A DNA stretch of 64,000 bases. It comes from Styela clava. Its lineage: Eukaryota. This document shows, one piece after another, positions 3,251 to 61,532 of the stretch; positions within the stretch are counted from its first letter, which is position 1; each line of letters opens with the position of its first letter. Position numbers and translations under genes: made by a program. The notes beneath the pieces are model-generated. The model was not told the DNA's origin. It searched no databases and saw only the letters and a list, made by a program, of their open reading frames with translations. The stretch is taken from positions 18,476,001 through 18,540,000 of the forward strand of contig NC_135255.1 of assembly GCF_964204865.1 (NCBI RefSeq), in the 5' to 3' direction.

Positions 3251-3283
<33 letters not shown>

Positions 3284-9005: not shown

Positions 9006-9038
<33 letters not shown>

Positions 9039-17467: not shown

Positions 17468-20004
17468 TCACAAATTATAAAGTTCGTTGACAACAACTTC
17501 TTGCTCGGATCTAGCATCAGATGCCTTAATAACGCTGTATACAGGTTCGCATTCATTTCCATGGCTTGTATTCGCGGCTTCCACAGTTGGAGAAGGCATG
17601 TGTTGGGGTGTTTGTAACTGGTTACCAATCTTCATTCGATATCTAAAATGTTCAAAAAGATATCATTTTGATACAGCAACCCTCAATATCAACAAAAATA
17701 GCAAAGAATAAAATGGGTCATATGTATTTTATAAAAGTAAATTAATCATATCACGAAAAAAAATATTTTATTAAATTATTTTCAGCTTCAACACGTGAAC
17801 ACGTGTAAATATATGCTCGCAGCAAATAATCGATCGCATACAAGTGATATGATAAAGTGAGTTGGTCGAATTCTGACAAATCAAAATTGTAAATCTAAAA
17901 ACGAGGTCCCCCCATCCGTTTTTTTATACGTTTCAATATATATATATTGGATATATTACTTCGATACAGCACTTTTCGATTTTCCTCAGTCACACGAAGG
18001 ATAACGCAAGTTTGAAATTCTTTGTTTGCAAATAATTTTGATATAGTTTAAAACGTGAGTTTCAACGAACTTTATCGAGAACAAACTGCATAAAACCTCC
18101 AAAAATGCGTTTCAAGGCGTCACTATAATATTCTTTTATTTCACACTAAGTTTATCATTTTGTAATACGTAGACACCAACCTGACAATCACCACAAAGAG
18201 AACGACCAAAACGATGAACAGTAGAACTCCGAAAATTATTGCAAGTTTGTAGTCCGAAGACACTGCTTGATCTTGATCAGTAATGCCAGATAAAACGGTC
18301 GAGTGTTGAGTAGTCGTTGAAATCGGCTGTTCCGGTATAGATGGTGTAGTTTTTTGTATTGTTTCTTTTGCTGTTGTTTAAAATAAAAGCATGCTTTATC
18401 CTATGATATGAAGACGTGTAATCGAGCGTTCAATTGTTAGGCAGGTGGGGCACAGGAACAAACATAAACTTGTAATTGACATCATTTCAGAATAACGCAT
18501 TCCCATTCAAAAAATCAATAATTAGGTCCTATATAGACTAAGAGTAGTCCTCCCCCATCCATCATGAAACAGTGGCAACTCCTAATAGACGTAACTGAGT
18601 CTAAACACTTATACAGATCTTACTTGTTGGTATTAATGGCTGGTAGATAATTTCCATTTCAAATTGTTGCCGATTGTTCGAAGCTCGTGATTCTGTAAAA
18701 TACTTCACAGTAATCGGTAAAATATTCTTCATTTTGGTCCATATTACGTTGGTGCAATCATTGGCAATGGAAACGTCGACAAAGGTAGAGTTTTCGGGAT
18801 AAAAGGCGAAGCAGTCGTTTTTATGGGATTTGCAAATGTTCCTGCTTCCACGATAATCTGCAAGGTAAATAAAATATATTCGATATCTTGTTTGATGCGA
18901 TAGATGGTAAAAACTTTACCTGAAATGGTTAGATATCCGCGGCATTGATAGTACCCACTATCTCTAAGACCCATCTCCGCCAATTTCAAGAGTAAAACCT
19001 GGTTTTGAAATTTACAATTTTGATTAGTCAGAATCCAACTAATGCTGACTACGTTGTATCCAGTATATCCGATAGATCTGATTGGTTGTGAGCATACACT
19101 TATTTTTTCTGCAAGAAGTCCGCGTGTCAACGCTGAAAATATAATTTAACAAATGAATGCTTTTCCTGAAATCATTGGATCACTTTTAAAAAGCAACTAA
19201 TGCGACTTTTTCATTGTAGCCACACATAATCGTTTTTTTAGATGTTTCCCACTTGCTGGTATAATGCTTGATTAAACCAAATATACCAAATGTTGTACAA
19301 TTCAAGAGTCCTGCTGAACAACAATACATTTTGGTAGTGTGCAGAAAGACTCTGAAATTGATTAGTATGGTCATGTTTATTCCTGTTGCAGCAGCCTTGC
19401 AATATACGCATACAGATCCACTGGCACAAACGCATTCGGGAAAGATTGGGAGTTAGTCTCACGTAATGTCTACTGTTAGTTATGCCAAATGTCGGTTGCT
19501 AATTAGTTTTCAGACGTTTATACTGGGCGGGAATGCATTCTGTCTTTGATATGAACTGTTGGAGTACGTAGGTTGAATGTCGGGTTTGCCATTCAGTGAG
19601 AATCTTGCAAAACACTTTACAAAACACAAAGTAGACCACGACCTCGTAGAACCGATAGTGGCGCGTATTCAAATGCAATGACTCAATTTTTATGCTTCGG
19701 AAATCCAAAAATAAAAAGGAGGTTTCGTCTTGTAGATTAGGATTTGAACCGACCAAAAAAAAAGAGCTCGCGATCTTGAAGTCCACGCTGCACCTCGTAT
19801 CATAAATGTAATCATACCTCCATGCTCTTACAATTCTGAGAATGGCTTACTCAGACACTATTTAACTAGACTATAGCCAATTAAGGATCTAATCATAAAA
19901 CTACGAATTCATTAGTCGATTTTGTCATTTGGCAGAACTAAATCACACGGCAACTTACCTAGAAGAAGAAACGTTTTAAGCATTTGTAATCCGGTTTTCT
20001 TCAT
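17468..20004 (-). CDS. Gene A: type I membrane receptor with signal peptide, divergent CUB domain, S/T stalk, TM and tyrosine-motif tail (~285 aa); apparently intact
   Basis: Exons 20004-19959 (MKKTGLQMLKTFLLL, least certain), 19132-18920, 18857-18624, 18370-18181 (TM LAIIFGVLLFIVLVVLFVVIV) and 17642-17468 (…EPVYSVIKASDARSEQEVVVNELYNL*). All introns are GT-AG with phases 1-1-1-2 and no stops. Confidence 0.85.
17690..17905 (+). pseudogene. Inverted degenerate copy of intron 1/exon 2 of a B-like gene, inside intron 4 of gene A
   Basis: Matches 23395-23620 (atcatatcacgaaaaaaaa…ttaaattattttcagct…aatcaaaattg(t/c)aaatct(a/g)aaaacg). Confidence 0.75.
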
Positions 20005-20744
20005 TTAATTTGAACCCAACTAATATAGCCTACCTTACAAATGCACTTTCATTAAAGGAAACTAACACGTTTCGTGCTTCTCTGACTGAACAGCCCAACA
20101 AATCGAAACAAGCGTGTTCGTCTGCTCTTGCTGTGCTTATTAAATTTTTTCTTCACTTCAATTCACCTCTTCCTTCATTATGTAATTAACAGGAAATATT
20201 TGTAATAGGTATCTTGTCTCAACGAATGCAAATGTTTTATGTAACCTATTGTTATAAAAAGCCTCATTCTGCAGAAAAGCAATTCTAGCGTCTACTATGT
20301 AAAACAGGTAGTCAATTGAAATTTTCCTAATTTAATTGAAAGCTGTGAACTATCAGTTTCTACGATTAACAATGAAAATTCCAATTTTTTCTCATCTCGC
20401 TTCCTTATGTAAATGAAACAGAAATACTTGTAATAGGTCTCTTGTCTTAGCGTATGCAAAAATGAAATTGCCTCTTGTTGCAGAAAACCACCATGTGAAT
20501 TACGGGCGATTCATTACCTCATGGTGAGTCACCTATGTGAAACTGGTATTCTTTTTAAATTTTAATTTCCATACATATTTCAGCCTCGGTTTCAGTTTCC
20601 ACGAGTAATATACAAAATTTTAATTGTTTTGGAGTCGTAATTTTCAATTAAAAATGAAAGTTTTCTAGACGCCAATGTTTATGCCATCGAATAATTTTTG
20701 TCAATTAAGATTCGACGTCGGAATTTTTGATTCACTCAAATGGT

Positions 20745-20880
20745 GGCTCGGGGGTGTGGCCGATCTTGCTAAGACTTGGGGAATACGCTCGCCAGCGCAC
20801 CTCTGATTACTCTGCGTGGGTTCGCAGGTCGAATCATGTGAGGGATGATTATGTGCGGGAGAATTTCAGTGGCTGATAAC
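20745..20880 (+). mobile_element. tRNA-derived SINE-like 5' fragment
   Basis: A-box-like tggccgatcttgctaag and B-box-like ggtcgaatc. Shares gggaatacgctcgcca(g/c)cgcacctctgattac with 35470-35682(-). Confidence 0.55.
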
Positions 20881-22941
20881 TATGTTTTTTTTACACAATA
20901 GAATATTAAATTTAAAATACGAGACGCAAAGCACCCTCGTCGAATGCATGATATTGAAATTTCAAAACATGATAAAGGTACTTACTGATTTGAAATAGAA
21001 ATATTCAAATAAATATAATTCACAGAAAGTAATCAGTGAGATCCATCGGTACTTTATAAATTCTATTTCAGTCAATTCGAAAGCGCATAACATTTTAGTG
21101 GTGAATGTTCTCAATCTTGGTGTTTAGATTGTTCGCTAATAAGTTTTTCGTGTTTCTCAGAACAAGGAAGTGTTTTTTTAATGCCATTGACAATTTTGAC
21201 TGAACTTTAGGGGCTGCATTTATGCGTGCACTCACTCTCATTATACAAAGTAACGCAAAATCAACAGAAGTGATCAACAAATGAAATGCAACCTGAAACA
21301 TTTAACGACTGACACCTTTTAACAGTATTGAGTTACAATGAAATGTCATTTAAACATTTCACGACTGACGCTTTTTAACAGTTACTTTTTATAAGTTGCC
21401 ATGACAAAAAAGATTTTACCTTAATTTTGCGTAACTTTTTTAACACCTGGTTAATTTTAAAACGTATCAAGTTGATCTGCTTCAACAGTTCAATCAGATT
21501 AAAAATATCGAATTACCGATACCGATAATTAAGTAGAACAAGTTTTTCTTTTTTTCTTTAAATTTACATCAACTTATATTGCATGTTAAAAAATTGGCTC
21601 AAACATTTGAACCATACGATCAAATTTGATTGCATCTATTTGCTTTCTATGTTTGTGGACTGAACATATAAAAAACTAAAAATAGCAACAAAATTAAAAA
21701 AAACTTTCCATTGAAAAGTAGTAATCAGTGAATCTCAACAACACAAGCTTAAATATTCTGCTTCTGGCTCCCATGTTCATGGCAAAGTCAAAATTAAGGA
21801 ATATTTGCATATAATAAAATGCCATCAGTTACATTTCGTAACGTAAGTTTAGTTGGATTGTTGTTGGTATCAGAAAATATTGATTTTCTCCCACATATCA
21901 ATATTCAAAGAGAAAGATTAAAACATTTATCAAGCGCAAATATGTCAATTATAGACAAAATTATGAGCAGGACAGAAGAAACCACTGTTTATTACGCCTT
22001 TATCTTGTTAGTGATGTTTTAATGTGTTCTTGACCCAAGAGTAATGGGACAACTAATCAAATATGATGTTTTGAAACCATTACTTATTTAGTGCTCCTTT
22101 ACCATGGGGACTACCTTCTCGTTAGAATTTTAATGTATTTTTGCTGCTATTTCTAAACTCACTTTACAAGAATTAACTAGATGTGATTAGAAAATCGTTG
22201 CCTGGGATTATTTATCAACCTAGTGACGTCATTAACGCTGTAGATAATGTCTATATTTACAGACGGGTGATTCAACCTAAGTCATTCAGTGGTTGATTCG
22301 GATTGAACTGCATACAATAAAATCTGGATAAATATAGTGAGTGCTTTTATCAATATTTTAATATCCAACCGAGAATATGATCGCTATTTTCGTTTTTGTA
22401 ACCTTACTAGTCACATCACATCAGGCATTGTTTGAAGGGTTCTGTTACATCACGTTTAAATCAAATTTGAATCAATACGGTTTTTTTAATACAAAAAATA
22501 TCAAATTCGACTGCCCGAAACTATCTACTTCACATGAATTGGACTTTAAATATTGCTGTTAAAAACGTATATGTGAGGTTTCTAGTATGACATTGATTGT
22601 CTATGTGGCCTAATTAAACAAATCATCACTCGTGTAACAGCGTTACTCTTGGAGAATGACAACCGCCAACGCGAAACTGGTTGCTGCACGGTAACATTTC
22701 GAATGCCAACCATTGGCACCCACCTACATTTCCGTGTGTAAAATCACTCTGTTGCGAAAATTATTCAGCAGTGATACTTACACAACACTTTGCACAATAT
22801 AGTTGTACGTGTCATGCTATGATGCACCAGTTATGAGAAAAGTTGGCAACATAGTGGATGAGGAATCACCCAGATATCTAATCTCTATTTGCAATTTCAA
22901 GAAACATTCCTATTCAAGCAACGCGAGCGGAGAAGCAAACA

Positions 22942-25280
22942 ATGATTCGTTGGACAGCGACAGGATGTTTTGCTTTTCATATATTAGCTCTCGTCAGTAA
23001 GTATTGCGATTTCATGGCATGGAATTTCAACGGAAACGGTTTGCTTAGTAAATCACTTACTACTGCTTTTGCTTGGAATAGGTAAAAAATTAGAAACAAC
23101 TGGTTAGATTAGGTATATGGAGTGAGGATTTATAGTGTATTCAGTAGTATATAAACGTAAATATATAAAACGTTTGGAATGTGTTTCAGAAAGTGTTTGT
23201 GTTCTGATCCATCAAATGACATTCAGCGTGAAGTACTTAACAGTTTGGGGGAATTGTACAAAATTGCAGAGCGCTACATTTATACGCTGTTCTTATAATT
23301 AAGGATTGTTTTATTCCACAAACCACTCTGAATATTGTTACATTATTTGTTCTCCATAAGCAATATCAGTAATATCTAAACAAAATGATATGGAACAACA
23401 AAGAAGGCAATGGGCCATTGTGTATATTGAAAATAATTTTATCATATCACGAAAAAAAAATTGTTGATTAAATTATTTTCAGCTCTGTCACACGGACTTC
23501 TTGCCGAAAACATAAATGTATGCTCACAATCAATCAGATCTATCGGATATAAGGGAAGTAGCAAAGTCAGCTTAAGTTGGACTCTGATTAATCAAAATTG
23601 CAAATCTGAAAACGTGGTTTTACTTTTGAGATTGGCGAAGATGTATCTCAAACCATACTCATATTGTCGCGGATCATTTACCATTTCAGGTGAGGTCTTT
23701 TATCAACAATATAGTATGGACAAAATCTCGAATATATTTTATCTTTCTTTGCAGCCTATCTTGAAAGCAAGAACATTTGTGACTACCCAGAAAACACCTG
23801 CTTCGTTTTTTATCCCGAAAAATCTACTTATATCGATTCCTCTATCGCCGAAAATTGCACCAATGTAAAATTGATCAAAATGGTGAATATTTTCCCGATT
23901 ACTGTGAAGTATAATCCAAATATTGGAATCATTGGCAAAACTTTGGAATTGCAATCATCTATCTTTCTTCCAATTCATCAGGTAAAAAATATAAATGCAC
24001 TGTACTTAGAGTTAAAAGAAGCCTTTTATCTATATATTACCCTAATTAACATTATTACGACCCGCAAGGAAAACTAGCGCGGCCCGCGTTGAAGTGACAA
24101 TTTTGAATGGTGCGCGGCCCGCAAACCGATATTTTAGTTTAGTTTTATCAGGTACATAGTGATTCCAATCCTTTGGGTTGCAATGCATATACCTGAGTCC
24201 AATTATTAGCTATACTTATGACGTCACAATGCTATGACAGCGGGCTTCAGTGAAACGAACAACGCATTTCATAAGATCAATAGCCAGAATTGTTGTGCAT
24301 GCAACTACTAGTAAGCATATGTTGAATGACGGTTCGGCCCGTGATTTCACCCACTTCATTCATGTACATGTTAATTGTAACAACTCTTCTCCATCATATC
24401 TAACTTATTTTCCTTCGTAATGCTACAAAATCTGAAATACTAGAAAGTAAAGTGAATTATGGAGCTTGTACCCCAGCCAATTATTAACTACGCGGTCTTT
24501 TAAAGAGTTGTTATAATACTAATATTGAACATGATTTCATTTGCAGATGACAAGGCCACAACTGCACAGCAGATTTCAACAATCGTACAGTCGGTTTCAA
24601 CAGCTGCACAGCCGGTTCCAACAACAGTAGAGCTGATATCAACAACTACTCAGCAATCCACCGTTCTGTCAAGCATTTCTGAACAAGTTCAAGCAGTATT
24701 CATTGACTGCACACTTGCAATACTTTTTGGGATTCTACTATTCATCGTCTTGATCGTTCTTTTTGTGGTGATTGCCAGGTTGGTGATTACATATTACAAG
24801 ATAATATACTTGGTGTGACATAGAGTAATATATGATGACTGATCAACCGATATCTTCAGAGATATTGGACGTTTGTTCTGATAAATGAAAGTGTAAAAAA
24901 GTTATAGTCTCATACCAAAACATTTTCTTACATCTTCGGTAGGATGGGGTTGTTCGCTAGCTTGAATCGCCAGAAGTTGCAAACAAAAAGTTTCAAACTT
25001 GCGATACTCCTTGCGCAACTGAAAATCTGAATATTGTTGCGAAGTACTATATCAAATATGCATATTGTGAGCTGTTGTCTTTTGATGATCTTTTTGTGCT
25101 TATTTTAGATATCGAAAGAAAATCGGTTACCAGCAACAAACGTCCCAAGGTCCGCAACATCGGCCTTCTTCGAATGTGGATGACGCGAATACAAGCGAAT
25201 CGTTATACAGCGTCATTAACAAGGCATCTAATGCCATATCCGAGCAAGAAGTTGTTATTAGCGAGCTTTATAATTTGTAA
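22942..25280 (+). pseudogene. Gene B: close paralog of A, frameshifted in exon 3 (possible secreted CUB-only product)
   Basis: Exons 22942-22996 (MIRWTATGCFAFHILALV|gtaagt), 23483-23689, 23755-23981 (227 nt, not 3n; shift near 23920-23940), 24547-24778 (7-aa stalk repeats plus TM) and 25109-25280 (…ESLYSVINK…EVVISELYNL*). Confidence 0.8.
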
Positions 25281-26514
25281 TATGGATTTCCCTGACTATT
25301 ATACGGTATATCGGTAAAAAAGAGAGTAACTTGTGTTGAAAAACTGAAGAAAAATAATTAGTTTTTTACGATAAACGAACAAACTTTATAATTTGTGATG
25401 TGATTTTTCCACGAATAGAATTCAGTAAAAAACAATTGGTAACTTGCGTTGAAAAACGAAGAAAAATATTCCGGGCGGTTGAAGATTTTTATTCTCAAAC
25501 TTTTCTATAAACTCTATGGAAACATATGCAATCATTTTTTTTATTTCTCGAGATATGTATACATCTATTGGCACGCTTTATAATATATATCCGTGTCATG
25601 CAAAAACATGAACCGATGCATGTATATCGACTTCGAGTTATTAGTTCATATCTTCTATTCCTTTAATAGCGTTTGTTGTATATTTTAACTTAAACTTTTG
25701 ATGAAGAATCAATTTGGACTATTTCTTAGGTTATTTTAAGTATGCTCAAATATTAAATATTTTAGGGGTCTGTTTAGTGAGCAAAAAAATGTATTTCTTC
25801 TTCAATTTTTTTTTGGATGAAATTGTGTAAATATTTAGTAAAGAAATAAACCTAGTATGAAAAACATCTTGAATGATATTTACTATAATTTTTTTTGGAT
25901 CACTTGACACCTTCTTTTTCATATGTTAAGCATTTTTTTAGAGCTACTGATGCTGGGATGACTTGTATGGGATGACGATGACGAATACGCATATTCAACC
26001 TCATTCAGCAATTTAGTGAAATGTCAAATCACATTTTCTCATTCGAAAGTCCATGAAAATATTTGACCAAACTATCCTGCATTTCAAGCAGTTTCGTCGA
26101 GATGGTTTATTTACATCGTTTCCTACACGTACTTCGAGAATTAGTAAACTAATTCATTGTTCAAGTATATCGTTATATCTGCTAACAAACAACAAACTGT
26201 TCTACGTCGGGTATATATTCGCTCCAAAGCTGTGCGCAATCCCCTTGAACTCATGCCCACTGACTGCATCACACATACTTTGAATTTTAAGATACTGTTT
26301 ATTGCAGCAGTAGCGGATGAAATGGTGCTCTTTATTATACGTGTTTGTTATAACTTATACCACTGTTCCCGTATATATGAATCGCGACCCAAAGCGGAGT
26401 CGCCATTCAGCAACGTGTCGCAATGTCGAATCTCTCATTCAAAAACCCATAAGAATATTTGAATAAACTATCTTGCATTCCAAGCATATTCATCGCAAAA
26501 GCTTGCCTTTACGT

Positions 26515-39768: not shown

Positions 39769-41592
39769 CTAGTTGACAAAACAATAAATCGCCCCCTCTC
39801 TCTCGCTGTTTTATGAGGAGCCAAACCTTCGCTTCGTGTAAGGTCCTAATCATCCATGTTTTAAAATGAATTTAGTTAAAAGAAAAGTGGGACGAACGGA
39901 ACCGTGTTTCCCTCTAATTAGAAATCATTTGAAATCGATTTTCCATTTTAGGTACGAAGAAAGAGACTTTTTTCGACAACTACAATCACCAACAAGAATA
40001 GTTTAGCAAAACGATCCTGCAGAATCTACACTTTGTGCCCAATAAGTCTTCTTCCACCTACTTTTTTAAGTACTCAATCTTTGAAATTGATTTTCCATTC
40101 GATGCTGGGAAAAAGAGACTTGATTCAACAACAACAATCACGCAAACAACAAGAAGAATTCAACAAAACGTTCCAGCAACATGTACACTTCGTGCACAAT
40201 AATATTAATGAATTTTAGATGAAAATGTAACAGTATTTTTGAAAACACGTGAGTATTATGACTTACCATGGATCGCGTCTTCCATACACGGTAAGTATTC
40301 GTAATCTATCTGAAATTTCCGAGGATACATCAATGCATAGAAATTAGGCGATGGTTTGAACTTTACAGTAAATGAATCAATTTCTTCATAGTTGTGGAAT
40401 CTTTGTGTACATTTCTGCGGCATTTTTATGTTTTCTAATTTTCGACATTTTTGATTGCTCCCGTGGAATATAAGACACGTGCCATTGGAAATCGTTGCAA
40501 TGTTTGTTCCTTGAAATAAGATAGTTTTTAATAAAACACAGTTAATAACTACGGGGATAAATCGGCTCAAATATTAGTACGGTAGGTGTTAAACGTGTAC
40601 TATGTAAGATCGTACTACCAAGAATGAATCATACGTTAGTTGGAAATCGAGTATAAATTTGATTTCTGCAACAAATTTTTTAGATATCACTGACGTTGGT
40701 TTTAGAAAATTCGCTTTTCTCAGCAACCAATGGACCAATTTCGGTATTTGACGACGGTCAAGTCTACTAAGAGGTAACTCTTTTTTTCAAATTTCTTTTC
40801 ACGAAAACACTTTGCTGTTTTATTATAAATAATAGGGAGCACTTTTTATTAGTCACGCCGGTATCGATGCGTGACCTACGCGTCCATTTATTCGATAATT
40901 CCCCTCTTTTTATATAAGAAAATAGGAAATGAGAGTAGTTGTTGTACAACTAGTTACCGTTAACGAATAAACTTCCAGCAAGATACGTGGTCTTAGATAT
41001 GAACATCATATTCATTGTACGAACAAACAAAACCAATGAAGAATTCTGGGAAAATTTGTGATGAGGAAGATTCCACGTTCTGCAGTTGCTTGACCGAAAC
41101 CTTTCTGGATAGTTTGGTGATTGAATGGACCCGTTTGTTGCTGTCATGCTTTCCATTATCGACGTGGACACGCTGATATAACGTTTTGGATCAACAACGC
41201 TGTGTGAATATAAAATGAAAAATGGTCAATTTTGTATTTCAATCCTTGACGATCTGAATATTACTAATTTATAATTATAATGGATAAAACAACTTGCTAA
41301 TATTCAAATTGATATATATAATGCAATGTTATTTATTGAATCTGTAACAAAACTGGCACTCCAGAAGTATGTGAAAGTAACTAATTTTGTTCGCCTACTT
41401 TACGTCGAGTTCTGTAAAGGGAATGAAGCCCATGGGCAGGGGCTATGTATTTATTTACCTGGCAAACACAGACAGTCCCCGAACTCGTAGTAGAACTAAA
41501 ATACAAAAAATCGGAATAAAATTATGGTCTAACCCTAATCTGGTACACATACTACGGAAGTATATGAAAAAATTTATTAACAAACTAAACTG

Positions 41593-44608: not shown

Positions 44609-47600
44609 TGCGTAGTTAATAACAAAACAAGCATCCTTAAACTTCCCAGAATTGTCAAACATTACGTATCTTAGCTATTAGTTGGGATTACGCGAGACCA
44701 ACTACTTTTCCTTGCTCCATGCCTTTGTGCAAATGGATCCGTGTAAACTATATTGCAAGGATGCTCTAGGAAGTTTAAAGATATCTATTCTGTTGTGCAT
44801 TCTATTGCTTTTCTTGTCTTTGTTGAAATATGCTTGTCTGACCTAGGTTAAACAAAACGTTACATATCAGTCAGTAATTTATTTTTTTCACCATGCTGAA
44901 AATACGAACTATAGTATACATACACAAATTAAAGGAAATATAAAAATTGCATTCCAGGGTGAAAGGAGACGCCGAAAACCAATACTGGTGATCGAGCCGC
45001 GGCACCCTTGAGGAAGAAATGCATGTAAAGACTCTTGTACTTGAACGTATAAGGCCCGAATGTTGTAAATTTCCAATATATGTTTTTGTTTGATAATGAC
45101 CAATGTATGAATGTCATAAAAGCGATTTAGTATTTTGTACGTTATCGAATTTTGTAAAATAATTCTGCAAAATAATTCATTCCAAACTTTGTTGTGCTAA
45201 GGGTTTGAATTGCACAACATAAGAGTATTCTACCTCTTCTTTTCTACGTAATCCTCCATTGAGTTGTTGGCCTAGTAACAAAGTCTATTAAATGTAACTG
45301 GGCCACATAAAAAAAAGTAATCGCCGACCCCTAGTTTGCTCATACAGAGTTAAAGTCTGGAGAAAAGTCTGTACTATGGAATATTATAACACGTGATATT
45401 TCGCAATAAAGTCGCATTCAATCACGAGTCTCCACTTTTTGACTGCCTATGACGTGGTTAGTGTAAATTAACTGGACGAAACCGCAACTTGATATCACAG
45501 ACGACGCTTCCGCGTTTCCCTGGAATTAGTAATAACAAAGGATGCAAAATACATTACTATAGACTGTAATTATTATACGGAAACTCTAAAAGCAGATTTT
45601 TTATTTTTCGGTCTAGACTGATCAGCATCACATATAATAGGCGGTAAATGGACATGGCTCCGTGAGACAATCTTACAAATTGCGATTACTCTTGTTCGAA
45701 TAATTGACTCTACGAAATGTTCTCGTTGTGTGCCTTACAAGTACAACCTTACCCACATATCGTTGTCACTAAAATAGTTTCCAAGAGGATGATGGTCAGC
45801 TGGGAAAGTACTCAAAAGTATTAACAAAAACAAATTACCAAAAAAAAAAAAAAATGGAAGTTGGATCGGATAACAGCAGGTCCATAATGTTAGCTCGAAC
45901 AAATATCAGTGGTTTCAGTTTTCCAGTTACCGAAATATAAGGAATGGACTAGAATAATGTGGAAACTTCCACTGTTTATCTGCGAGTATCTGCTTTTATC
46001 GTGTTTAAAAAAGCATCAGATACGTTTCATTAATTGCTTTTATAGGATGGTAGAGTATGATATATAGATCAGTGTCTGAAATGCATTTGAGACATATTAA
46101 TTTTATTTCCTTATTCATTGGTATTGGAAATTCGTGTGATTACGCATTGGTTGTCGCCTGGAAAAGCATATTCGGGGACGCAAAAACGAAACCCAGGTCA
46201 TTTGAAACACATTCCAAAAGCACGGGTTTTCAAATTTTTGGTGTTATGGTGCCAGTGAAGCGGTTGGCTATTATTTACGGAATGCATTAAAATAAAAACA
46301 AAAAAACACATTGTTATTATCCGAATAAATTAAAGCAAGGCGTTAACATTCAGACGCTGCCATTGTCAAATTTTATCAATGCCGATATTGTTTCTTTGGA
46401 CATTCACAAAAATAACCAAGTCGATAATAAGTAAACGAATAGCTCGTTTTTCTCACGGATCTCTGAGGCTCCGTATGCAGTACTTTGAATACCTATGTTC
46501 TAGATTATGATGCGGTACGTTTTTGTCGGTGGGCCATATCACCAATTTTCAGACATCGAGTTGGGTCACACAAAAAAATTATTTCTTTTGCTTACACAAC
46601 GAATTACAGTAATAAAGGTATCGGGCAAAATTACGAAAGATTTAACGCAGCGAAAAGAGCAAAAAAATGTACTTTTACCCATATGCCCTATGGGGGGGGG
46701 GGGGGGGGATCTGAGTTTTGAGAGGGACCACACAATACGGCTTGGCGAATTGAGTCGTGGCCCACGGGCCGCCTGTTGTCCTGTTCTTATTGGAAAAGAA
46801 CTTTCGTACTAAGCGTCCTAGATTACCAAAACTTTTGGGTACAATCATAGAAAAAAAGAGTTCAAGTGTTTAGAGAAGTTCATTTTAGTAATAAAAGTAT
46901 AGGTTCTATTTTTGATAACCCCGTACATAAATTTCACAGCATTTTTTTTTCACAGCACTTTCTTTCCGTGAAATGATAAATCTGCATTGGAAGAACGGGC
47001 ACAAAAATTTTTATGAATCCATATGAATATATTAGTAATTATACCGGGCTTCTTTATTATATTAATTCAGCCACGCCCATAATAAATCGTTAACAACCTT
47101 GTCCTCGATCGTCTTATATTTAAACTCATTACAGCCTTTCCCTGTCTCCAATAATAAAACGTGATATGTAATTAAGCTCATTTCATCAAGATTGTTTCAT
47201 AGGAAGTACAGTAAAACTAACTATAAAATATTCAGTGTTAAATTATACAATTGTACTTATGTAGGTTATAAAATCACCACGTCGAAAGCATACACTAAAC
47301 CCGGAGAGAATCGACTCCAACCACTTCTGTGCAACCCACATATTCCATATCCACCGCATTCTCTGGGATATCAAATCAGTTTCAGGATACGTCCGTTGAT
47401 CGCTTACTCACTATAGTTTTTGGAATTTTACTCGGCATAGTTTTGATGGTTTTGCTTTGGTTGCCGTGAGGTGTTGGTATATTATCAATTTTCGGATCTT
47501 TTGCACCAATCCCCCGACAACGCTCAAACTAATAAATTAAGTAATTATCCAGTTACCGTTATGAATGGAGATTGCTCTGGAAATTCAAATGTTTAAATCA

Positions 47601-48667
47601 TTCCCATCCCAATTGGATAATTACTAATTTGTTATTTTAAAACGTTGGGTGGGGGTGGGGGGTGTTTTTCTCAAATCTCACATTTTTGCATTGGTGCCGG
47701 GGGCTTTGTACAAAAGATCCCGCTGTTCTTTTTCCCCAATGATGCTTATCCGTTCAATTCAGGTTCTCAACCAGTGGGCCACAGACCTATTAGAAAATGC
47801 TAGAGTTGTTGATAAAGTTAGTTAAAATTGATGATTAGTAACAATTGATGATGATGTTTTTTGTTACAGGGTAGTTTTCCCTTACTTATTATTAAAGTGA
47901 AAGTGTCTATTTTTGCAGGAGGAATTCTATGTTTTTCTTAAAGTTTTTTTCCAAACTCGAAAGAGTTAGTTGGCCACAGAATTTTTGTCCAACGAAAATG
48001 GGACACGAAAGAAAAAGGTTGAGAACCACTGCTAGTTTTAAGTAATTGGAACTAGTATATGATATACGGTGCTATATTTTGCCAACATTATAGGATCAAA
48101 TAACATCGCATTAATATTGTTGTTTCTGTAACTTACCTGTACGGTGATTATGCCTTACTTTAATTAAGCAAAGTTTGATTGAAACCCGAATATCAGATTT
48201 TGATGTTGGGCGTTTTTTCTTTAAAGGAGTAAAAGGTGTTATATCTATTATTAAGAACAGGATTGTTTTAAATATCATATTGTAAAATTAACATTCTCTA
48301 TCATACGTATGAATAGCAATCAGATATTCTTGAATTGAATTAGCAACTAACCTTGAAAGCGTGTGCTGTGTGTTGCAATAAAATTACTATTTCTTTATTC
48401 AGATGCCAAATGGTCAATCGCCAATTACAAATACTGCAAAATGAGAAGCATGGACAATCTACAAATATGGAAACAACGGAAGAAGGTGAAAATCGGCACT
48501 CATTCAAATTAGCCTGACCCACTGGTAGAATAAACTGCTCCGAAACCAGCAACGTTACAAACCAAAGAAACGAACATACAATTTATAGTGTTATTAATAA
48601 ACAAGCAAAACAAAACAACGTGAAATCTGAGCAAAAGATTGTTGTCAACGAAATATATAATATGTAG
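44609..48667 (+). pseudogene. Gene F: decayed CUB/TM receptor
   Basis: Exon-2 remnant ~44630-44786 reads ASLNFPE…Y*…FVQMD…GSLKIS. TM exon 47265-47470 has two frameshifts (LLTIVFGILLGIVLMVLL). Last exon 48403-48667 has an internal TGA at 48515, then HTIYSVINK…KIVVNEIYNM*. Leader and exon 3 were not identified. Confidence 0.75.
47760..48031. mobile_element. hAT-type MITE
   Basis: Inverted ends ggttctcaacc / ggttgagaacc. Confidence 0.6.
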
Positions 48668-51839: not shown

Positions 51840-51871
<32 letters not shown>

Positions 51872-53589
51872 GAACGAACAGTTTTAAGCACTTGAAAGAT
51901 TATAGGTTATCATATGATTGTTCTTGAATATATTACATTGGGGCCCATCTTGTTTCGTTCTCTATCTAGCTTTACGGGTTCTCAACACATGACTCGACAT
52001 AACCAACTTATATTATCAGTTAACATAAAAAGCACCGCACAGTAGAACAGTTACAAAATGACTACCACGTTTTACAAGGACAATCAAAGACATCAAACAC
52101 AGGTGGCGCTATAGGGTACATTACGTCATATCGTAACACATCTATGAGCTCCGAAAATGTATTATGAAAACAGATAGCAAAATGAAACTATTCTCTGTTG
52201 TTTTCTAATTTAGACGGCAAAACAAATCCGACTCTAGAAATCAGAGCATTGGGCAACACGATATCTCATCATATAAACGAATGGTTTTAATCACTTATTC
52301 AAAAATTATTCAAGTTTTTGACCAAGTTTAATTGGACATTTGACACTGGATTGTTCTTGAGTATATTGGATGTGTGAGTAATTTTTGACAGAGTATTTCA
52401 CATCATCCTACAAAGACGGTCAAGAGTGCAGTTTATGAGAAGCATTGTCCCGAGTACATAACACCATTAAGTGGTACAGTTCAAAGCAATCAATAGGGGG
52501 CGCTCCAGAAGTGTGTGTGTACCAATATGGAGGGAACTAATTTTGTTCGCCTACTTCACATCAAGTTGTATAAAGGGACTGAATCCTATCGGCAGGGGGT
52601 ATGTTCATTTGGCTAACACAGACAGTCCCCGAACTCGTAAATGAACTAAAAAAAAAAGGAAAATCGGAATAAAATTATGACCTAACACACATTACGGGAG
52701 TACGCAATAGGATTTATGACCCGGGTTGAGAAATTTGGGAACAACTGTCATAAACGAAACTCGTCCAATACTATATTTAGTGACAGTACACATTGTACTG
52801 ATACTGAAACGCGGGTATATGAAACATTCGAATTCAGTAGCTGACTATACTCATACTCCTATTGCTTACACCCGACTACATTGAGCGCCTATGACGCATT
52901 CTATTATTGCGCATTGCAAAGGATGAGCATTATATTACCGCAAACACTCCCCGTTTGATTTTGAAAACCGATGCACATAGTATTGTCGCATTATTCAGAG
53001 CGCTTGTACCACAGGAGGTATTTGGTTATGCGATCTAAGTGGTTGTGTTATTTTAGTTAAACTAGGATCGGAATTCTATGAGGATATCTTTATAAACAAG
53101 TGAACACTTTGAGCAAGTGAGGTCGCGTACCAAAGTGACACTCTATCGATACTATAGTATATACTGGGGAAAATAAAGAGGATATGATTTTATGTTTACC
53201 TAGAGGAGAGAAAAACCGCTAGAGAAGCCAGATAATTTGGCAATCACCTGTCTACTGTTGTTTTACTAATTCCGAATCGGAAGAGATACATAGTTGAATT
53301 GCCCCTTTTGTCGCGGTAATATAATTCTTCGTAAACTATGTAGATCTTCGTGTGTCCATAGGTGGATTAATTAAATATTCCAACACTTACAAGGCAAAGA
53401 TTTTTCACGATAAAAGTGCCTAAAAGCAAGTAAATATTCTTTTTAAAGGTTAATACCAACTAAATATTGACGCGTTGACTAACTGCTCCGACGACCCGAG
53501 TGATTCTACCTTCATAACTTCGCTGTCGTGAAACAAGGGTCATACTTCTGCATTCTCCGATTTGAACGATGCAACCACCGTTGGATAAA

Positions 53590-55990
53590 ATGCTTGCGAT
53601 GATTCTCTTGATAAGTAAGCATTCGTTTTTATTATTTGTCGCGCATATACCCCGACAAATTTTAATACAATGTCGCTAAGTGAGCCCGCACATAAAATAG
53701 GTCTGATGAATGATCGATTACAAATTTGCTATGCTGCCCATAGCTCTCTAACTGTAAATAAGAAATATATATATTTAATTGTATCGGAAAATATAATAAT
53801 TTTTTAATATTTAGAGAATATAAATATTATCATTTATTTTGTCATTTACATTTATCCATTCCTTCTATTTTGGCGCAGTGGCAAATGCTTGTCTGGGTGG
53901 CGATATTGATAAAACAATTGATATGTGCGAGAACAACCGTGAAGAAATCAGTCACAAATATGTAAGATGGACATCGACCGCAACATGGACTTTGAGGGGA
54001 AATGACTGTGCTTACCCAAATAGCATGCTTTTACTGAAACTCACCGAGATGGATCTTTACAAGACTTCATATTGTTACGGTTATTTGCAGATATCAGGTG
54101 AAATAATTATAACTTGACCTATTTTTGTATTACACATTATTTCATCCACATTGATAGCAGTCCATGTAAGCAAAGACATGGTCATATTTTATGCGGTACA
54201 TGTAAGCTTTTGAAAACCTAATATATCCCAATGTCTACTGTGAATCAGAGATAAATGAAGCTGAAATAAGTGAATATGTTTATTGATTAATAAAACTATC
54301 TCTCTAATACTTCGTCATATCAACATTGTAACTGGAATAGTTGAACAAATTTTTCACGAAAAATCATCTGAATTTCAGCATTTCGCTCAAACATAAATAT
54401 TTGCGCCGTATATGCGGGCTGTTGCTTCCTAATAACAGCAAACTCTTCATCTATAAACGGTTTCTTCGTGCAAATGTCTGACTGCAAACGGATTTACTGG
54501 ATTTTTCGTGATGATATATTTCCTGTAACAATTACATACAGTCGATATGAGTTGAATGACCACAGTTTCAAAATAGACGTTAGATATCTTTCACAAAGAA
54601 CTGAAACTACTACAGCAAGTAAGTGTTTCTATATATTCTTTTAGTCTTCAAGAAAATTTTTTATTAGCGGCATTGGCATTATATTGCTTATTACTTATAT
54701 TGCCTTTTCGTAAGACTTTTTTATCATTTTTATTTGAGTGATGAAAGTTGGAATATGTTCAGTATGAGAAAAAATCAGAATTTAATTACAAGAGAGCTAC
54801 GCCCAAATGTATGGACACGTCTGTTCGCAGTACAGTACGGTTTACCGTATCGTCAGATCACAGTCTACAAATATATTCACACCAAGCGAAGCAGTACAGT
54901 CGGACACAAAATGGCGTCCGCGAAGCAGTACAGTCGGACACAAAATGGCGTCCGATGTCCGTAGAACGTTTAGTGACGTCATAGAAAACAAATCTCACAG
55001 AGCTAACAGAAATATTTGAAATAAATAAAAGTAATAGCCTTCTGGAGAAAAACTTCATCTTTAACCACTAAAAATTTCAAAGCAATTGGTCCAGTAATCA
55101 AAAATAATAAGATTTTCCACTAGGTGTCCAAAAAGTGTCAAAGAACAACAAATCGATCGTTATGTCCACTACGTGTCCAATAATTTTAAACTAATGCGTA
55201 AATCATCCATTTAGTTGTGAAACTCTTTATTTCCACACGGAAAATATTTATAGTCTTAACTTTATAGTCTGTACTTTCCATTAAAAAATGCTGCATTGTA
55301 TGTAACACATATTTTCATTTTATTTTACGCGATTGTACCACCGACAACAGCTCCCACACAAAGTTCCCCAATCGAGCGCACTCTCAGCATCATACTTGGA
55401 ATCCTAACAGGAATTGTGTTGGTTGCTTTATTGGCTGTCATCATAAGGTGAATACAATTATTTGAACTAGGATGTCGTATCTTAACAGAACAATTGGAAA
55501 AAATTGACTGATTACTAGACAAAAAAGATAGATACCAGCCAATAATATGTGGCTATCGTAGAGGAATACAATTCGTTAAGAACAAAATTTATTTAAAATA
55601 ATATTATAATATTATCCCAATTAACTATTAGACATAACGTATTTTGACCGCAAAGTTCCAATTACCTATTTTCGTCCTCGCTGTGTTTCTATGTCCTCTA
55701 CTCTCCGGCTTGAAGTAAATACCTACCGATACCACATTCAATCTCAAAACAGTAATAAACCTATTATTATTCAAAGGTATCGAAGCATTATACAAAAACT
55801 CCATGCAAACTCGGACGCTCTGAACGCAACAGCAACCTTAGAAACCGCAAGGGGAAGTGGCGAACAGAATCCGTACGACTTTGCCAATGAAGAAATCGCA
55901 GGAACAAGCAACAACGCTTCCGCAAACGTACCGGATGCGGTTTACAGCGTTGTAAACAAACAAGCAAAAAAGAGCGCGAAGCAACAGTGA
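53590..55990 (+). CDS. Gene G: CUB-like/TM receptor with a short stalk and an ITIM-like tail (~264 aa); probably intact through a cryptic acceptor
   Basis: Exons 53590-53614 (MLAMILLI), 53879-54097, 54379-54618, 55351-55447 (TM LSIILGILTGIVLVALLAVII) and 55777-55990 (…QNPYDF…DAVYSVVNKQ…*). Phases are consistent and there are no stops. Confidence 0.8.
54788..55181. mobile_element. Insertion in gene G intron 3, absent from paralog H; contains a 34-bp tandem duplication
   Basis: The flanks are contiguous in H (~60655-60690). Inverted motif tggacacgt / acgtgtcca; gcgaagcagtacagtcggacacaaaatggcgtcc occurs twice. Confidence 0.65.
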
Positions 55991-56037
55991 GATTGTATCT
56001 CACTGAGACAAAACAAACTTGCACAACTTTCTCGGGA

Positions 56038-56312
56038 GAGAATGAGACAACGAGATAGCGATCGGAGACCGCCGACTTATCGATCTAGTGGCGTGTATCC
56101 TTCGCTTTGACTCAATAGCGAAACCGCGTCTCCCATCACTAATTAATTAATAACTCGCTAAATATACGACATAATTCATCCAAAATCAATAGGCACATGC
56201 ACAATTTGGAGCAGATTCAACCTCGCTTTCGTGAGATATCGCGTGTATCTAACAGACAGACAAACAGACAAATACCTATCAACATACTTACCGATCAAAA
56301 TCGATGGGTAAT
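56038..56312 (-). mobile_element. DINE-1/HINE-like element just after the gene G stop; second copy at 57093-57378
   Basis: Reverse-complement similarity to 39373-39768 including (agac)n; absent at the equivalent position after gene H. Confidence 0.75.
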
Positions 56313-57734
56313 AATGGACAAAAAATAACTTGCTGAACTCAAATTTTCTCGAAAACTCACTAAGTATATTTGTGTTTTAAGAACATTATAAATATTTTGC
56401 GAACACTTATCTAGTATTTTTGCACTACAAAAATTTTGATATTTGATAATTTTGAAAATGATGATATAAAACAATGTCGGAAGAAAAGTCGTCCAATTGC
56501 ACGTTTTGTAACCTTTGTTTTGTAATTTAATTTTGATGGGTCTGATGAGTCAAGTTAGAAATGGTTAAATAAGTTCAAAAAGGCTTTTGTAGTCCCTGAC
56601 TAGATTTAATTTTTAAGTTTTTTTTTTGAGTTTTTTATTTTGACTTGGTGTCGGAATGGCAGTTTTTAGGCTGTTGTTTCGTTACTGCGGCCATAAATTT
56701 ACAGACTCAAAATGCCATGATGTGGTAAACTTTCTACACATATTGGTTGTTTTCTTGTGCGTGCACAATTTGAAGGTATTTCAACAAATAATTTAAATTT
56801 TGACTATCTTGAATTGGCGGGTATTGTACATCCCGAGACATAATCAACTTTTCATTTATTTTATTAATTTTTTCATTATCGAACCCTTATTTGTTAACAT
56901 TTGTTTCCCATGTAAAATAAAGAATTTATGTATATATGTAAGACCTCATTGTAGTATGACTTTGTGTGGATTTGACGAAACAGGCAAACATTTTTTTTTT
57001 ACCGGGGAATCTTAATAATAACAGACAGGCATGTGATTACTGTTACTAACAATGTTGGTTGAAATTTCAAAGTCCAAACTTTATAAAAATGCATCGAGAT
57101 AGCGATCAGAGACCGCCGACTTATCGATCTAGCTGCGTGTATCTTTCGATCTGACTCAATAGCGACACCGCGTGTCCCATCACTAATTAATTAATAACTC
57201 ACTAATTATACGACATAATTCATCCAAAATCAATAGGCTTCTGGTCCGAGATATGATGAATGCACATGCAAGCAGATTCAACCTCGCTTTTGTGAGATAC
57301 CGCGTAACATACGAAAGTGTCTAACAGACAGACAAACAAACAAACAGACAAATACCTACCAACATACTTATCAATCAATCAAACTGAAAAAGACTCGCCA
57401 CACTATAACATCTATTAACATACCGACTGTGGATGGATTTTACGGAAACAGAATTGTTACAAAACTCGACCCCACTACTATTAACGTCCTCAAAATTCAG
57501 CATATAAACTAGTGCTTTTAATAGCTTCAAAAAATTATAATTATATGCTATAATGCGATCAATTTTAATTTGACACTGATTGTTCTTGGGTAAATGTTAT
57601 ATGCGAGTAATATTCCATAATCCTACAATTGCCAGGAGGGATTGTATCTGGTAAAGATCACTTGTACATAACACCATTAACTAGTTTTATTCAAAAGGGT
57701 CCATTACCCCGAAGAGGTTAGAAACCTCTGTGAT

Positions 57735-58790
57735 AACCGTAACTCGTTCTATACAGTATTTAGTAAGAGTACACAGTGTACTGATACTGAAACACAAGCA
57801 TCTTGAGCTTTCGAATTCAATAGCGGACCATAGGATAGGATTTATATATTTATCCCGGGGGAGAAAAAATCCGTTAAGACGGCTTAATCATATGACGAAT
57901 CCCGGCTTCTCATCCGGTTACCAGTCGATGTCGGATATGGTATTAGTTAGTTATTTTCTTTCGCAAGCATGGACTTGACCACATTTCTGCTTCTATTGGT
58001 CAAACCTGGGTGAGTTACTGTTGTTGTGAGGGTCTATGACCCTAGTTGAAATGTTCGGGAACCACTGACATAAACGAAACTCGTCATATACTATATTTAG
58101 TAAGAGTACACAGTGTACTGATACTTAAACATTCGACTTCAATAGCTAACCATACTTCTATTGATCAAACCCAGATGAGCTATAGTTGCAAGAGTCCATG
58201 ACCCTAGTTGAGATGTTTGGAAATCACTGACATAAACGGAACTCGTTCTATACTATATTTATTAAGAGTGCACGGTTTACTGTTACTGAAACACGAGCAT
58301 CTGAAACATTCGAATTCAATAGATGACTATACTCATACTCCTATTGCCTACAACTGGAGATTGTAGACATTGAACGCATATCTATGACGTATTTTATTAT
58401 TGCGCATTGCAAGGGAAGACGTATTATATTGTCTCCTGGACTTACCGTTTGATTTTGAAAACCGATGCAAGTAGTATTGTTGCTTTATTCAGAGCGCTTG
58501 TACTATAAGTGCTATTTCGGTATGTTATCTATGTCTTTTCCGACAGACCGAATTTTTTATCATCCTACACAAAGCGGTCTTAGCGTGCAGTTTTGATGAG
58601 AAACATTGTCTTAAATGCGTCGTTGAGCGTCCATGACATATTCTATTATTGCGCATTGCAAAGGAAGGGCATTATATTACCACCTACACTCACCGTTTGA
58701 TTTTAAACCCGATGCACGTAGTATTGTCGCATTATTCAGAGTGATTGTACTCTTGGTGCGCTACCTCGGTATGCTACTTCAGCGATTGTG
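57735..58790. repeat. Local tandem duplications upstream of gene H
   Basis: The motif aactcgt…ata(c)tatatttagtaagagtacacagtgtactgatac occurs three times (57740, 58078, 58240) versus once upstream of G (~52758). The block 58385-58530 is repeated at 58633-58760. Confidence 0.7.
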
Positions 58791-59325
58791 TGATCTCGGT
58801 AATTTTTGCTCGGGTTAGGATCTGAATTCTATGAGAATGTCTTTATGAATTAAGATTACGTCAAGTGAAGTGAGATTGCGTACCAAAGTGGCACCCTATA
58901 GTAAATATAAGGAAAATGAATATGATTTTATATTTACCTAGAGCAGAGGGAAAACGATAGGGAAGCTACTTCATTTTGCCCGTTTATTCCGAGTGAGATG
59001 TAGAAAAGCCAAACAGTTAAACATTGCATGAACGGAGACGTATTACATTCACTATGTGTTAGTAGTTGTTTACTTCACTTGCTTATACTATGTAGATCTT
59101 CATATGCCCACACACGAGGCAGAAAATATAAATGAGAAAAATGTATAAAAGCAAGTAAATCATCTTCTTTTTAAAGATAATACTAACCAAACATTGACGC
59201 GTTGATTTACTGCTTCGACGACTCCACCCATTCCACCTTAATAATATAGCTGTCTTGAAAATCGTGAAGCAAGTCTCTTACTTTTACATTCTCTTATTTG
59301 AACGATGCAACTACAATTTGATAAA

Positions 59326-61532
59326 ATGCTTGTAATAATTCTCGTGATTGGTAAGGATTCGTATTTTTTAATCACGTAGAAAGCAAACCCTTTTTAATAA
59401 GGCAAACAATGCCAAAGTTGAATATAAATTATCAAGTGAGTCCACATAAAAAAGTCATACAAATTGCCCTGAAAAGGACGACTAAAAAGTGGTTATGGCG
59501 CTGAATAACTTCAAATGTGAGGCATAATTTTATATTTACATCTAATAAATCGTACATTTTAAACATATAAAATATAAATATTTCAGTCATTTTGTCGTTT
59601 ATATTCAACCATTTCTCTTGTTTTGGCAAAGTGACAAATACTTGTCTGGGTCGAGTTACTGAAAAGACAATTGATGTGTGTGCGGAAAATCATGCACATA
59701 TCAGTCACAATCCTAGTGGATGGGGGACTTGGGATTGGAATTTGGATGGGCATGGCCGTACATACCCTAATAGTATGCTTTTACTCAAACTCACGGAGAT
59801 GAATCTTTACAACTATCAACATAATTTTTGTTATGGTTCTATGAAGATATCAGGTAAAACAATTATTGATTGTGGTAATTTGAAAGTTGAAGTACGATCT
59901 CTGGTATTGTAAACTGATATCGTATGGAAATATTAAGATCGACATGCACTAAGCTTCACCTACAATGATAGAAACAAAGTTACCGTTCACACTTCATACG
60001 GTGCATGTAGGCTATAGAAAACTCAATATATACCAATGTCTACCTGGGAATGTCCACACAATTTGTTACAGTAATTTGAAAATACCGATGTTCATAAAAT
60101 GTACAAAAATTGCTTCAGTGGTTAGAATATTATTAGTGGATAGGCAGGCATCTGTATATGACTGAGAAAATATCGCACTGATGATTTGATCGTGTGCTTT
60201 ATCCTATCAACATTGCGAATGAGCTACGTACCCAACTGAAGCCAATTTTTAAGTCTCATCATCATTTCAGCCTCTGAAGAAAACACGAACATTTGTTGGT
60301 ATAGCACAGGCGGTTGCTTTTTAATCACAGCAAACTATCCAACCAATATAAATGTTACCTTCGTACAAATGTTTGAATGCAAATGGATTTACCGAGATGA
60401 TATATTTCCTGTAACTATTAGCTACAAGAGAACATAGAGTAACCACCACAATTTCACAATGGACGTCAGATATCTTCTAGAAAGAACTGAAACTACTGCA
60501 GCAAGTAAGTACTTCTATTATCTTTTATTCCTCGAGACATTTTTGCGTAGATGATTATTTTATTAGTTGCTTTGGTGTATATTACCTTTTCGTAATACTT
60601 TTTCAGTATTTTTGAGTGATGAAAGTTGGAATATGCTTAGTATATGAGAAAAAAATCAGAATGTAATCATAATTTTAAACTATTGAGTAAATCATTCATT
60701 TAGTTGTGAAACTCGTTATTTCTACTCGAATAATATTTACAGTCTTAAAACACCAATAAAAAATTCTGACTGTCTTCCTTATTAAAAAATGTATTTATCA
60801 CATATTTTTATTTTACGCAATAGCACCAACGACAACAGTAAAAATCACAACACAAGCCGCAACCAAATCTTCGATCAAAACAACAACAGCCAACGAACTT
60901 GTTTCAATTCCTCAGCAAATACCCCAAAGTTCACCCATCGAACGAACGCACTCTCAGCATTATACTTGGAATCCTGCTAGGAATTGTGTTGGTTGCTCTA
61001 TTGGCTGTCATCATAAGGTGAATAAAATTATTTAAACCAGGATTTCGTATCTAAACAGAACATTGAAGAAATTTGACTGTATACTAGGAAAAAAGAGACA
61101 GAGAGCAGCCAAAATCGAACTGGCTAGAATTTGTTAACAACTTGATTTGATATAAATATGATCACAATTCACTATACATCAAAATATTTTGACCTCAAAT
61201 TCCCAGCTATATATATTTTCGCCCTCGTGACTCTACGACCACTATTCTGCTTTCAGTAGATATCGACCGAAACTACACTCAATCATAACGATAATAACAA
61301 ACCTATTTTTATTTAAAGGTATCGGAGCATCGTGCGCAAACTCCGTGCAAACCCGGACTCTCAGAACGCAACAGCAACCTTAGAAATAGCAGGTCGAAGT
61401 GGCGAACAAAATCCGTACGACTTTGCCAATGAAGAAGTCGCAAGAACAAGCAACAATGCTTCCGCAAACGTATCGGATGCGGTTTACAGCGTTGTCAACA
61501 AACAAGCAAAAAAGAGCGCTATGCCGCAGTGA
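59326..61532 (+). pseudogene. Gene H: tandem paralog of G, inactivated
   Basis: Exons 59326-59350, 59632-59853 (Cys2 changed to Arg), 60271-60504 (in-frame TAG at 60435), 60824-61017 (4-bp cgaa duplication before the TM) and 61319-61532. Confidence 0.85.

Follow-up and report, generated by a model that had tools for sequence, protein, structure and literature searches.

We examined the cytoplasmic tails encoded by eight units, A to H, within a 64,000-nucleotide stretch of the genome of the tunicate Styela clava (the window; C6:18476001-18540000 of a 377-Mb assembly), and find that across the whole family to which they belong these tails evolve fast yet keep two short linear tyrosine motifs. 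Paralogs are told apart by which whole motifs they have or lack, and not by whether a tail carries an inhibitory (ITIM) or switch (ITSM) motif of the immunoreceptor tyrosine-based kind. Motif anatomy and analogy with known receptors make it, on balance, probable that the tails constitute a two-site phosphotyrosine docking module in a S. clava receptor family, its paralogs differing in the sites retained.

The window is AT-rich, with a GC content of about 0.30-0.375 in 2-kb windows. A sequence-only reading of this DNA had quoted 11 tail peptides, and six-frame translation located all 11, each at the end of the interval where it had been placed; the motif peptides sit in the last exon of the eight units (Table 1). 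The gene plan comprises a signal-peptide exon, two ectodomain exons with a short intron between them, a stalk/transmembrane (TM) exon that closes with ..VR before a gt donor in phase 2, and a tail exon that opens, after ag, with N-[Y/F/C]-R... The corresponding product has an ectodomain of ~140 amino acids from two exons, a Ser/Thr-rich stalk, a TM segment and a tail of 50-90 amino acids in one last exon. For A, G, D and part of B, the exons as we read them agree exactly with database proteins (P0002, P0009, P0015 and P0038; exact matches bear the NCBI name 'uncharacterized protein LOC...' [Styela clava]), and the splicing of gene C is given by transcript contigs of public runs, with joints at 31629/32402, 32617/33078 and 33912/34674 and the TM exon at 33800-33912. 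Genes A, C and G look intact.

To compare tails across the family, we used a set of 33 (6 from the window, 17 from fetched loci, written L, and 10 from database proteins, written P), leaving out F, L052, L056 and L060 as interrupted by a stop or frameshift or fragmentary, and set motif counts against 2000 composition-preserving shuffles. The proximal core [VILM]Y[SH][VTE][VI] occurs in 24 of 33 tails and 8 of 15 lineage representatives (shuffle mean 0.05), and the C-terminal pattern [VIL]x(1-2)Nx[LIV]Y x(1-3)-end in 16 of 33 tails and 9 of 15 representatives (shuffle mean 0.03); for neither pattern was the observed count reached in any of the 2000 shuffles. When 12 divergent lineages were aligned with MAFFT (56 columns holding at least 8 residues), the same positions ranked highest: an N and the proximal Y (11/12 each), then the distal Y, an L, a V and a juxtamembrane R (10/12 each), with S at +1 as runner-up (8/12) and every remaining column at 7/12 or below. 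The earlier proposal of tyrosines retained in an otherwise diverging tail is thus upheld, the shuffles being far exceeded and the tyrosines standing among the top-ranked columns; set against its neighbours, the proximal tyrosine is the more conserved, and the distal tyrosine is in the top rank along with V(-5), N(-3) and L(-1). In a set of 26 genes identified by their ectodomain alone, from which the truncated, tail-less models P0004, P0010 and P0014 were omitted, 21 carry the proximal motif, 13 the distal and 5 neither, and all 13 distal-bearing genes also carry the proximal motif. The two tyrosines lie 20-25 residues apart in most two-motif tails, and 14 apart in P0011.

The two sites are kept on different sides of their tyrosines. 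The proximal consensus, [DE]x[VI]Y[SH][VT][VI]NK, is kept at and C-terminal of the tyrosine: in lineage-weighted counts V/I at +3 is present in 12/12, N at +4 in 6.5/12 and K at +5 in 8.2/12, together with D/E at -3 (10/12) and V/I at -1 (8.8/12); Y, S/H at +1 and V/T at +2 are likewise conserved, and -2 is variable (P, A, H, T and others). Since residues after a tyrosine are also read by AP-2 mu2, this pattern of conservation fits either an SH2 or an AP-2 ligand. The distal consensus, [RK]-E-x-V-x-N-x-L-Y followed by 2-4 residues to the C-terminus, is kept N-terminal of the tyrosine, with E at -7 in 8/11 lineages, V at -5 in 11/11 and N at -3 and L at -1 in 10.5/11 each; R/K at -8 and the tyrosine are also kept, and the 2-4 residues between it and the stop are variable. 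As set out in the excerpted text of PMC4985636, ligands of phosphotyrosine-binding (PTB) domains are read before the tyrosine, with an Asn at -3 and a contact at -5, and SH2 ligands after the phosphotyrosine. Conservation before the distal tyrosine, with Asn at -3 and a contact position at -5, is the PTB pattern, and the resemblance of the terminal motif to a PTB site that had been noticed in the window thus extends to the family.

Two further motif classes were considered and rejected. The endings after the distal tyrosine (n=20) are NL in six, NM in three, TMT in three and TM, HM, NAL, SSL, TIT, TLP, TMAP and AMAS in one each; a class II PDZ ligand, which calls for hydrophobic residues at 0 and -2 of the C-terminus, fits poorly with 7 of the 20 finishing in T, P or S and with a length that varies from 2 to 4. 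An immunoreceptor tyrosine-based activation motif does not fit either, YxxL/I-x6-12-YxxL/I being found in none of the window tails.

Paralogs had been described as carrying different motifs, and they do, a whole site being present or absent through discrete events: a frameshift, the insertion of a repeat, stop codons, intron retention and the lack of a tail exon. Both sites are present in A and C; E has the distal site without the conserved proximal core, keeping other tyrosines; D and the tail-less isoforms have neither. The tails of the G type (G, H, L031, L053 and L054) stop 13-14 residues past the proximal +3 residue and carry NPYDF upstream, so that the described lack of a terminal motif in G and H, and their NPYDF, hold for their relatives too; as NPYDF is common only to close relatives, its conservation says little. 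Outside the window, L032, L036 and L051 have in common a 1-nt deletion that frameshifts the distal motif away and leaves the proximal only. Intron retention yields the tail-less isoform P0037. For the second gene of locus L033 (L033:4441-4629, C6 about 18.448 Mb; model P0001) the present assembly shows a TM exon but no tail exon, and the model stops after the TM, an older model of the same LOC, P0032, having a full two-motif tail; this difference may be a presence/absence polymorphism of the tail.

Within the window, the usually conserved N of the distal motif is replaced by S in gene B, whose exon 2 is frameshifted by the loss of 7 nt (about 23930) and whose NCBI model is a 139-aa product of TM and tail only. 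Gene D is intact as far as residue 32 of its tail, which has neither conserved motif and then passes into a repeat-derived stretch; the core of this repeat is found again at 30039 and 41991. Remnant F has an in-frame TGA (48515-48517) upstream of both motifs, and no ectodomain exons were detected for it; exon 2 of gene H contains a TAG and lacks 9 nt (about 60380-60435).

Whether tails have also been exchanged between ectodomains was assessed from exon 2. Identity in exon 2 and identity in the tail are weakly correlated (Spearman 0.18). On an exon-2 tree that left out P0033 and P0007, the approximately unbiased (AU) test did not reject a single clade of genes with G-type tails (p 0.64) or the grouping of L032 with L036 (p 0.19); it rejected only a clade of C and P0021 (p 0.024). 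As this is the sole rejection and P0021 is an older model of uncertain status, we make no claim of module swapping. P0021 and P0028, older NCBI models of LOC120331778, have an exon 2 81% identical to that of D, a C-like TM and a tail 87% identical to that of C; because C and D lie on opposite strands in the window, these models would derive from another copy or haplotype, or be chimeric.

On a view that builds on the sequence-only reading, the proximal motif is a genuine ITIM or ITSM and substitutions at -2 (S, T, P, A) switch paralogs between SHP-type phosphatases, SAP-like adaptors and other partners, which we find quite improbable. The V/I at +3 that an ITIM calls for is seen in 12 of 12 motif-bearing lineages. 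The view has in its favour SLYSVI in B and TIYxxV/I in C and F, a tandem-SH2 phosphatase locus in the genome and a tunicate precedent in the Botryllus schlosseri receptors termed FcoR, whose alleles and splice forms swap ITIM and hemITAM in the portion of PMC12582321 drawn on here. The distinction of ITIM from ITSM types as a functional difference is nevertheless not borne out: strict ITIMs, [I/V/L/S]-x-Y-x-x-[I/V/L], occur in 2 of 33 tails against a shuffle mean of 3.5, and strict ITSMs, T-x-Y-x-x-[V/I], in 2 of 33 (C and the database model P0021) against 0.8, no more than in shuffles. Position -2, which defines the class, is the most variable position nearby (P10, A10, H3, T2, D2, S1, N1), and even among the closest relatives of gene C its TIYHTV becomes PVYHTV, PIYHTV or PVYQTV; the genes holding the only canonical ITIM (B) and F's ITSM, moreover, are disabled. 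With -2 unconstrained and B and F disabled, the ITIM/ITSM changes look like drift rather than evidence for switched partners.

A further alternative, in which the motifs are functionless in themselves and are shared through recent descent or gene conversion between tandem copies, we regard as highly improbable. Close paralogs (G, H and L031; the A-like group) do share 50-85% tail identity, and P0021, with its D-like ectodomain and C-like tail, hints at exchange. Against this, both motifs persist between clusters on six contigs, where tails are otherwise about 20-40% identical, and the motif decays in disabled or frameshifted copies (N to S in B; L032, L036 and L051). The kept residues also use several synonymous codons (V: GTT 8, GTA 7, GTG 1; N: AAC 9, AAT 5; L: four codons; Y: TAT 12, TAC 4), which speaks for purifying selection over the long term and not for recent copying.

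The docking explanation takes the eight tails to belong to a tandem array of a S. clava-restricted family of small type I membrane receptors. The proximal site, once phosphorylated, would be read by an SH2 protein, the distal Phi-x-N-x-L-Y (Phi, a bulky hydrophobic residue) would, like that of CD200R, be read by a PTB-domain adaptor of Shc, Dok, IRS or FRS type, and paralogs would be distinguished by which sites they retain; we infer this mechanism from motif anatomy and precedent. Candidate readers of SHP-like, Shc-like and IRS/Dok/FRS-like kinds could exist in the genome: within 4 kb of a single strand at C8:10921780-10925824 two SH2 exons precede a tyrosine-phosphatase exon, on the minus strand at C3:18260013-18267417 PID exons precede an SH2 exon, and the IRS-type PTB domain has seven matches.

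The main rival, which shares the PTB step with the docking explanation and which we judge unlikely, holds that both motifs are sorting signals of endocytic or scavenger receptors, YxxPhi binding AP-2 mu2 and Phi-x-N-x-x-Y binding PTB domains of the Dab2, ARH, Numb or CED-6 type without phosphorylation. Every proximal motif, in all 12 lineages, has the tyrosine and V/I at +3 of such a signal, NPxY-type motifs are mostly known from trafficking (PMC8007030), and PID-type PTB genes are present in the genome. The conservation exceeds a minimal YxxPhi, however, taking in D/E(-3), V/I(-1), S/H(+1), N(+4) and K(+5), and the proline of NPxY is absent from the distal motif.

Several observations weigh against two-site docking. 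The fit of the proximal motif to a YxxPhi AP-2 sorting signal is one, and the missing NPxY-type proline, its -2 position being held by E in 6/11 lineages and Q in 4/11, counts here as well as against sorting. Most distal motifs leave two residues after the tyrosine, which to our knowledge is unusual among PTB ligands. Four of the eight window units (B, D, F and H) are damaged, so part of the tail variation is decay, not design. Of the 17 locus-derived tails, 13 came from a search with a tail profile, which is biased toward tails that bear the motifs; the recount on ectodomain-ascertained genes corrects this bias only in part, and the lineage groupings and alignments are of our own choosing. 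In the excerpted text of PMC8007030, finally, NxxY motifs often act in trafficking rather than signalling.

Several known systems bear on the docking explanation. Among vertebrate receptors with ITIMs and ITSMs (PD-1, the SLAM family, Siglecs and KIR/LILR) are tandem fast-evolving ectodomains, two tyrosine motifs about 20-30 residues apart and some tail-less paralogs; the Styela family differs in that -2 is not kept, the second motif is PTB-like and the ectodomain is not a recognised immunoglobulin (Ig) fold. CED-1, Draper and MEGF10 combine in one tail a PTB-type NxxY (NPxY) site and an SH2-type YxxPhi (YxxL) site, and Tyr1062 of RET, in 'NKLY', is an NxLY site without proline that docks Shc, Dok and FRS2; the ectodomains of these proteins are unrelated to those of Styela, and motif order and position differ. 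CD200R, a vertebrate inhibitory receptor whose motif is not known to lie at the extreme C-terminus, is the nearest precedent that we could document. In its motif, K/R(-5), N(-3), I/L(-1) and Y are conserved across vertebrate classes and the proline is not conserved outside mammals, and the phosphorylated tyrosine recruits Dok2, as far as the excerpted text goes (PMC8007030). Like the Styela proteins, CD200R1 is described there as a single-pass receptor with further conserved tyrosines upstream of the key one, and its K/R(-5)-x-N(-3)-x-I/L(-1)-Y can be set beside the Styela distal V(-5), N(-3), L(-1), Y; unlike them, it has an Ig ectodomain, a basic rather than hydrophobic -5 residue and an acidic EEDE stretch; the comparison is one of motif and not of sequence homology.

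The FcoRs (fester co-receptors) of the colonial styelid B. schlosseri carry ITIM, hemITAM and 'core' motifs, including a core-2, [A/D]VYxxV, of unknown function, and their alleles and intron-retaining splice forms alter motif content, according to the same portion of PMC12582321. Like the Styela family they form a tunicate multigene family with tyrosine-motif tails, Styela genes lying in clusters and FcoRs in polymorphic ones; DAVYSVV of the Styela G type matches the core-2 pattern, and the tail-less product of intron retention in P0037 is comparable to the FcoR splice forms. In that account, however, core-2 motifs come in pairs 29-33 residues apart, whereas the Styela AVY..V of the G and L032 types is never paired, its partner being NPYDF or NxLY, and FcoRs are described as Ig-superfamily proteins with many exons, a description that sets the Styela family apart. 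In the main text of PMC12582321 the terms 'NxxY', 'PTB' and 'Dok' do not occur.

At least 48 matches to an exon-2 profile lie in the S. clava genome, clustered on six contigs: C6 (18.20-18.58 Mb), C1 (27.58-28.05 Mb), C19, C16, C17 and C3. A wider exon-2 profile (23 sequences), run against 1.84 billion protein representatives, gave only 26 matches at E<=1e-3. The 14 looked up by name comprise nine S. clava proteins, one 965-nt Logan contig and four long multi-stretch matches that are unrelated or nameless (Giardia, Mya arenaria, one 'surface anchored' and one without a name), so that no named relative outside Styela appears among those 14; further members of the list correspond by sequence to genes of the S. 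clava genome. A homology search with an 18-protein alignment returned just five S. clava proteins; with the tail region of P0003 as query, P0003 alone came back from three candidates. Both searches missed known paralogs, and their blanks are uninformative on other species. Literature searches found no publication on the Styela family.

No significant Pfam domain was found in ten exon translations, ten full-length proteins or the 18 alignment members, and a PDB profile search gave weak, TM-driven matches only. The best match to CUB in the Pfam searches, and the sole one, is that of P0021 (E 0.14; 12.9 bits against a cut-off of 21.4; profile positions 5-33). The first ectodomain exon of gene D (window 40956-41156, minus strand) reads ..GSIQSPNYPERFRSSNCRTWNL.., and it is the D-like P0021 that gives the family's only CUB match; the other paralogs have lost this sub-threshold signature. 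Proteins of the C1 cluster (P0007, P0030 and P0033) have other tyrosine-rich tails, for example ..AYSDITIEPTYEQPMESTYQNL before the stop and a 106-aa tail with 8 Tyr; these divergent tails mean that the family holds tail types beyond those of the window. P0011 has Glu and Asn inside its TM.

Table 1. Exons and motifs of units A to H (positions in the window).
Feature	Position	Strand	Remarks
Gene A tail exon	17468..17641	-	last exon including stop; exact map of P0002 = XP_039255181.2; apparently intact gene
Gene A motifs	PVYSVI 17528-17545; NELYNL-stop 17471-17488	-	terminal VVVNELYNL-stop; six-frame translation
Gene A stalk/TM exon	18180..18368	-	closes ..VIV R before gt in phase 2; joins tail exon
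Gene A ectodomain	exon 1 18921-19133; exon 2 18625-18858	-	short intron between; no significant Pfam match
Gene B tail exon	25110..25280	+	SLYSVI 25200-25217; VVISELYNL-stop (SELYNL-stop 25260-25277); P0038
Unit E tail exon	29407..29614	-	AYYETA, NAYEID; terminal TVVNELYTM-stop (NELYTM-stop 29410-29427)
Unit E short-ectodomain/TM exon	30579-30728	-	Cys in outer part; Glu in TM
Gene C tail exon	34674..34868	+	TIYHTV 34785-34802; TVVNQLYTMAP-stop (NQLYTMAP-stop from 34842)
Gene D tail exon	38410..38568	-	first 32 residues family-like, then repeat-derived stretch to ..PDLYA-stop; P0015
Remnant F TM exon	47299..47466	+	1-nt deletion creates TGA just before donor
Remnant F tail exon	48403..48667	+	TIYSVI 48578-48595; IVVNEIYNM-stop (NEIYNM-stop 48647-48664)
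Gene G tail exon	55778..55990	+	NPYDF 55868-55882; AVYSVV 55937-55954; no terminal NxLY; apparently intact; P0009 = XP_077970209.1
Gene H tail exon	61320..61532	+	NPYDF 61410-61424; AVYSVV 61479-61496

Unit E appears as a TM-and-tail-only unit, with no ectodomain exons detected nearby. It is transcribed and spliced, contigs of two runs joining its TM exon to the tail exon (..29614), and 133-168 nt of 5' sequence in these contigs fall outside 29300-34900. We take its layout, a short outer part with Cys and a TM with Glu, to recall partner chains such as DAP12. Between E and C, the summed depth of contigs is very high in each of the four runs over the stretches 30048-30234, 30609-30982 and 31731-31917, where many contigs are partial and rearranged; these are probably abundant repeat- or transposon-derived transcripts. 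Elsewhere in the window, positions 1-13700 hold a 5,755-bp unit in three tandem copies, 100% identical to one another, and a partial fourth after an N gap (13157-13356); the unit may have been amplified very recently or be multiplied through an artefact of assembly. Open reading frames, one in each full unit (2420-2656 and 8175-8411, minus strand), weakly match the family exon-1 profile (E 1.6e-4).

A bolder extension of the docking explanation, tentative and on the whole doubtful, would make the array a tunicate counterpart of the natural killer (NK)-type paired-receptor clusters, built on an ectodomain without a recognised domain and combining a fixed SH2 site with a C-terminal NxLY PTB code like that of CD200R or RET; paralogs would be switched between states of signalling by crude genetic changes, namely frameshift (1 nt), repeat insertion, tail-exon loss and intron retention, and E would serve as a DAP12-like partner chain.

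The family offers a general caution, in that ITIM and ITSM labels should not be drawn from single sequences if the class-defining position is not conserved in the family. Its motif-loss paralogs form a natural series for comparison, and a small set of peptides, together with the candidate readers (SHP-like on C8, Shc-like on C3 and IRS/Dok-type PTB), makes the docking explanation testable in a tractable animal. If the motifs are indeed docking sites, the closest invertebrate relatives of vertebrates would have invented a tyrosine-motif receptor cluster independently, one in which an SH2-type site is joined by a PTB-type site, in contrast to the ITIM/ITAM pairs of vertebrates.

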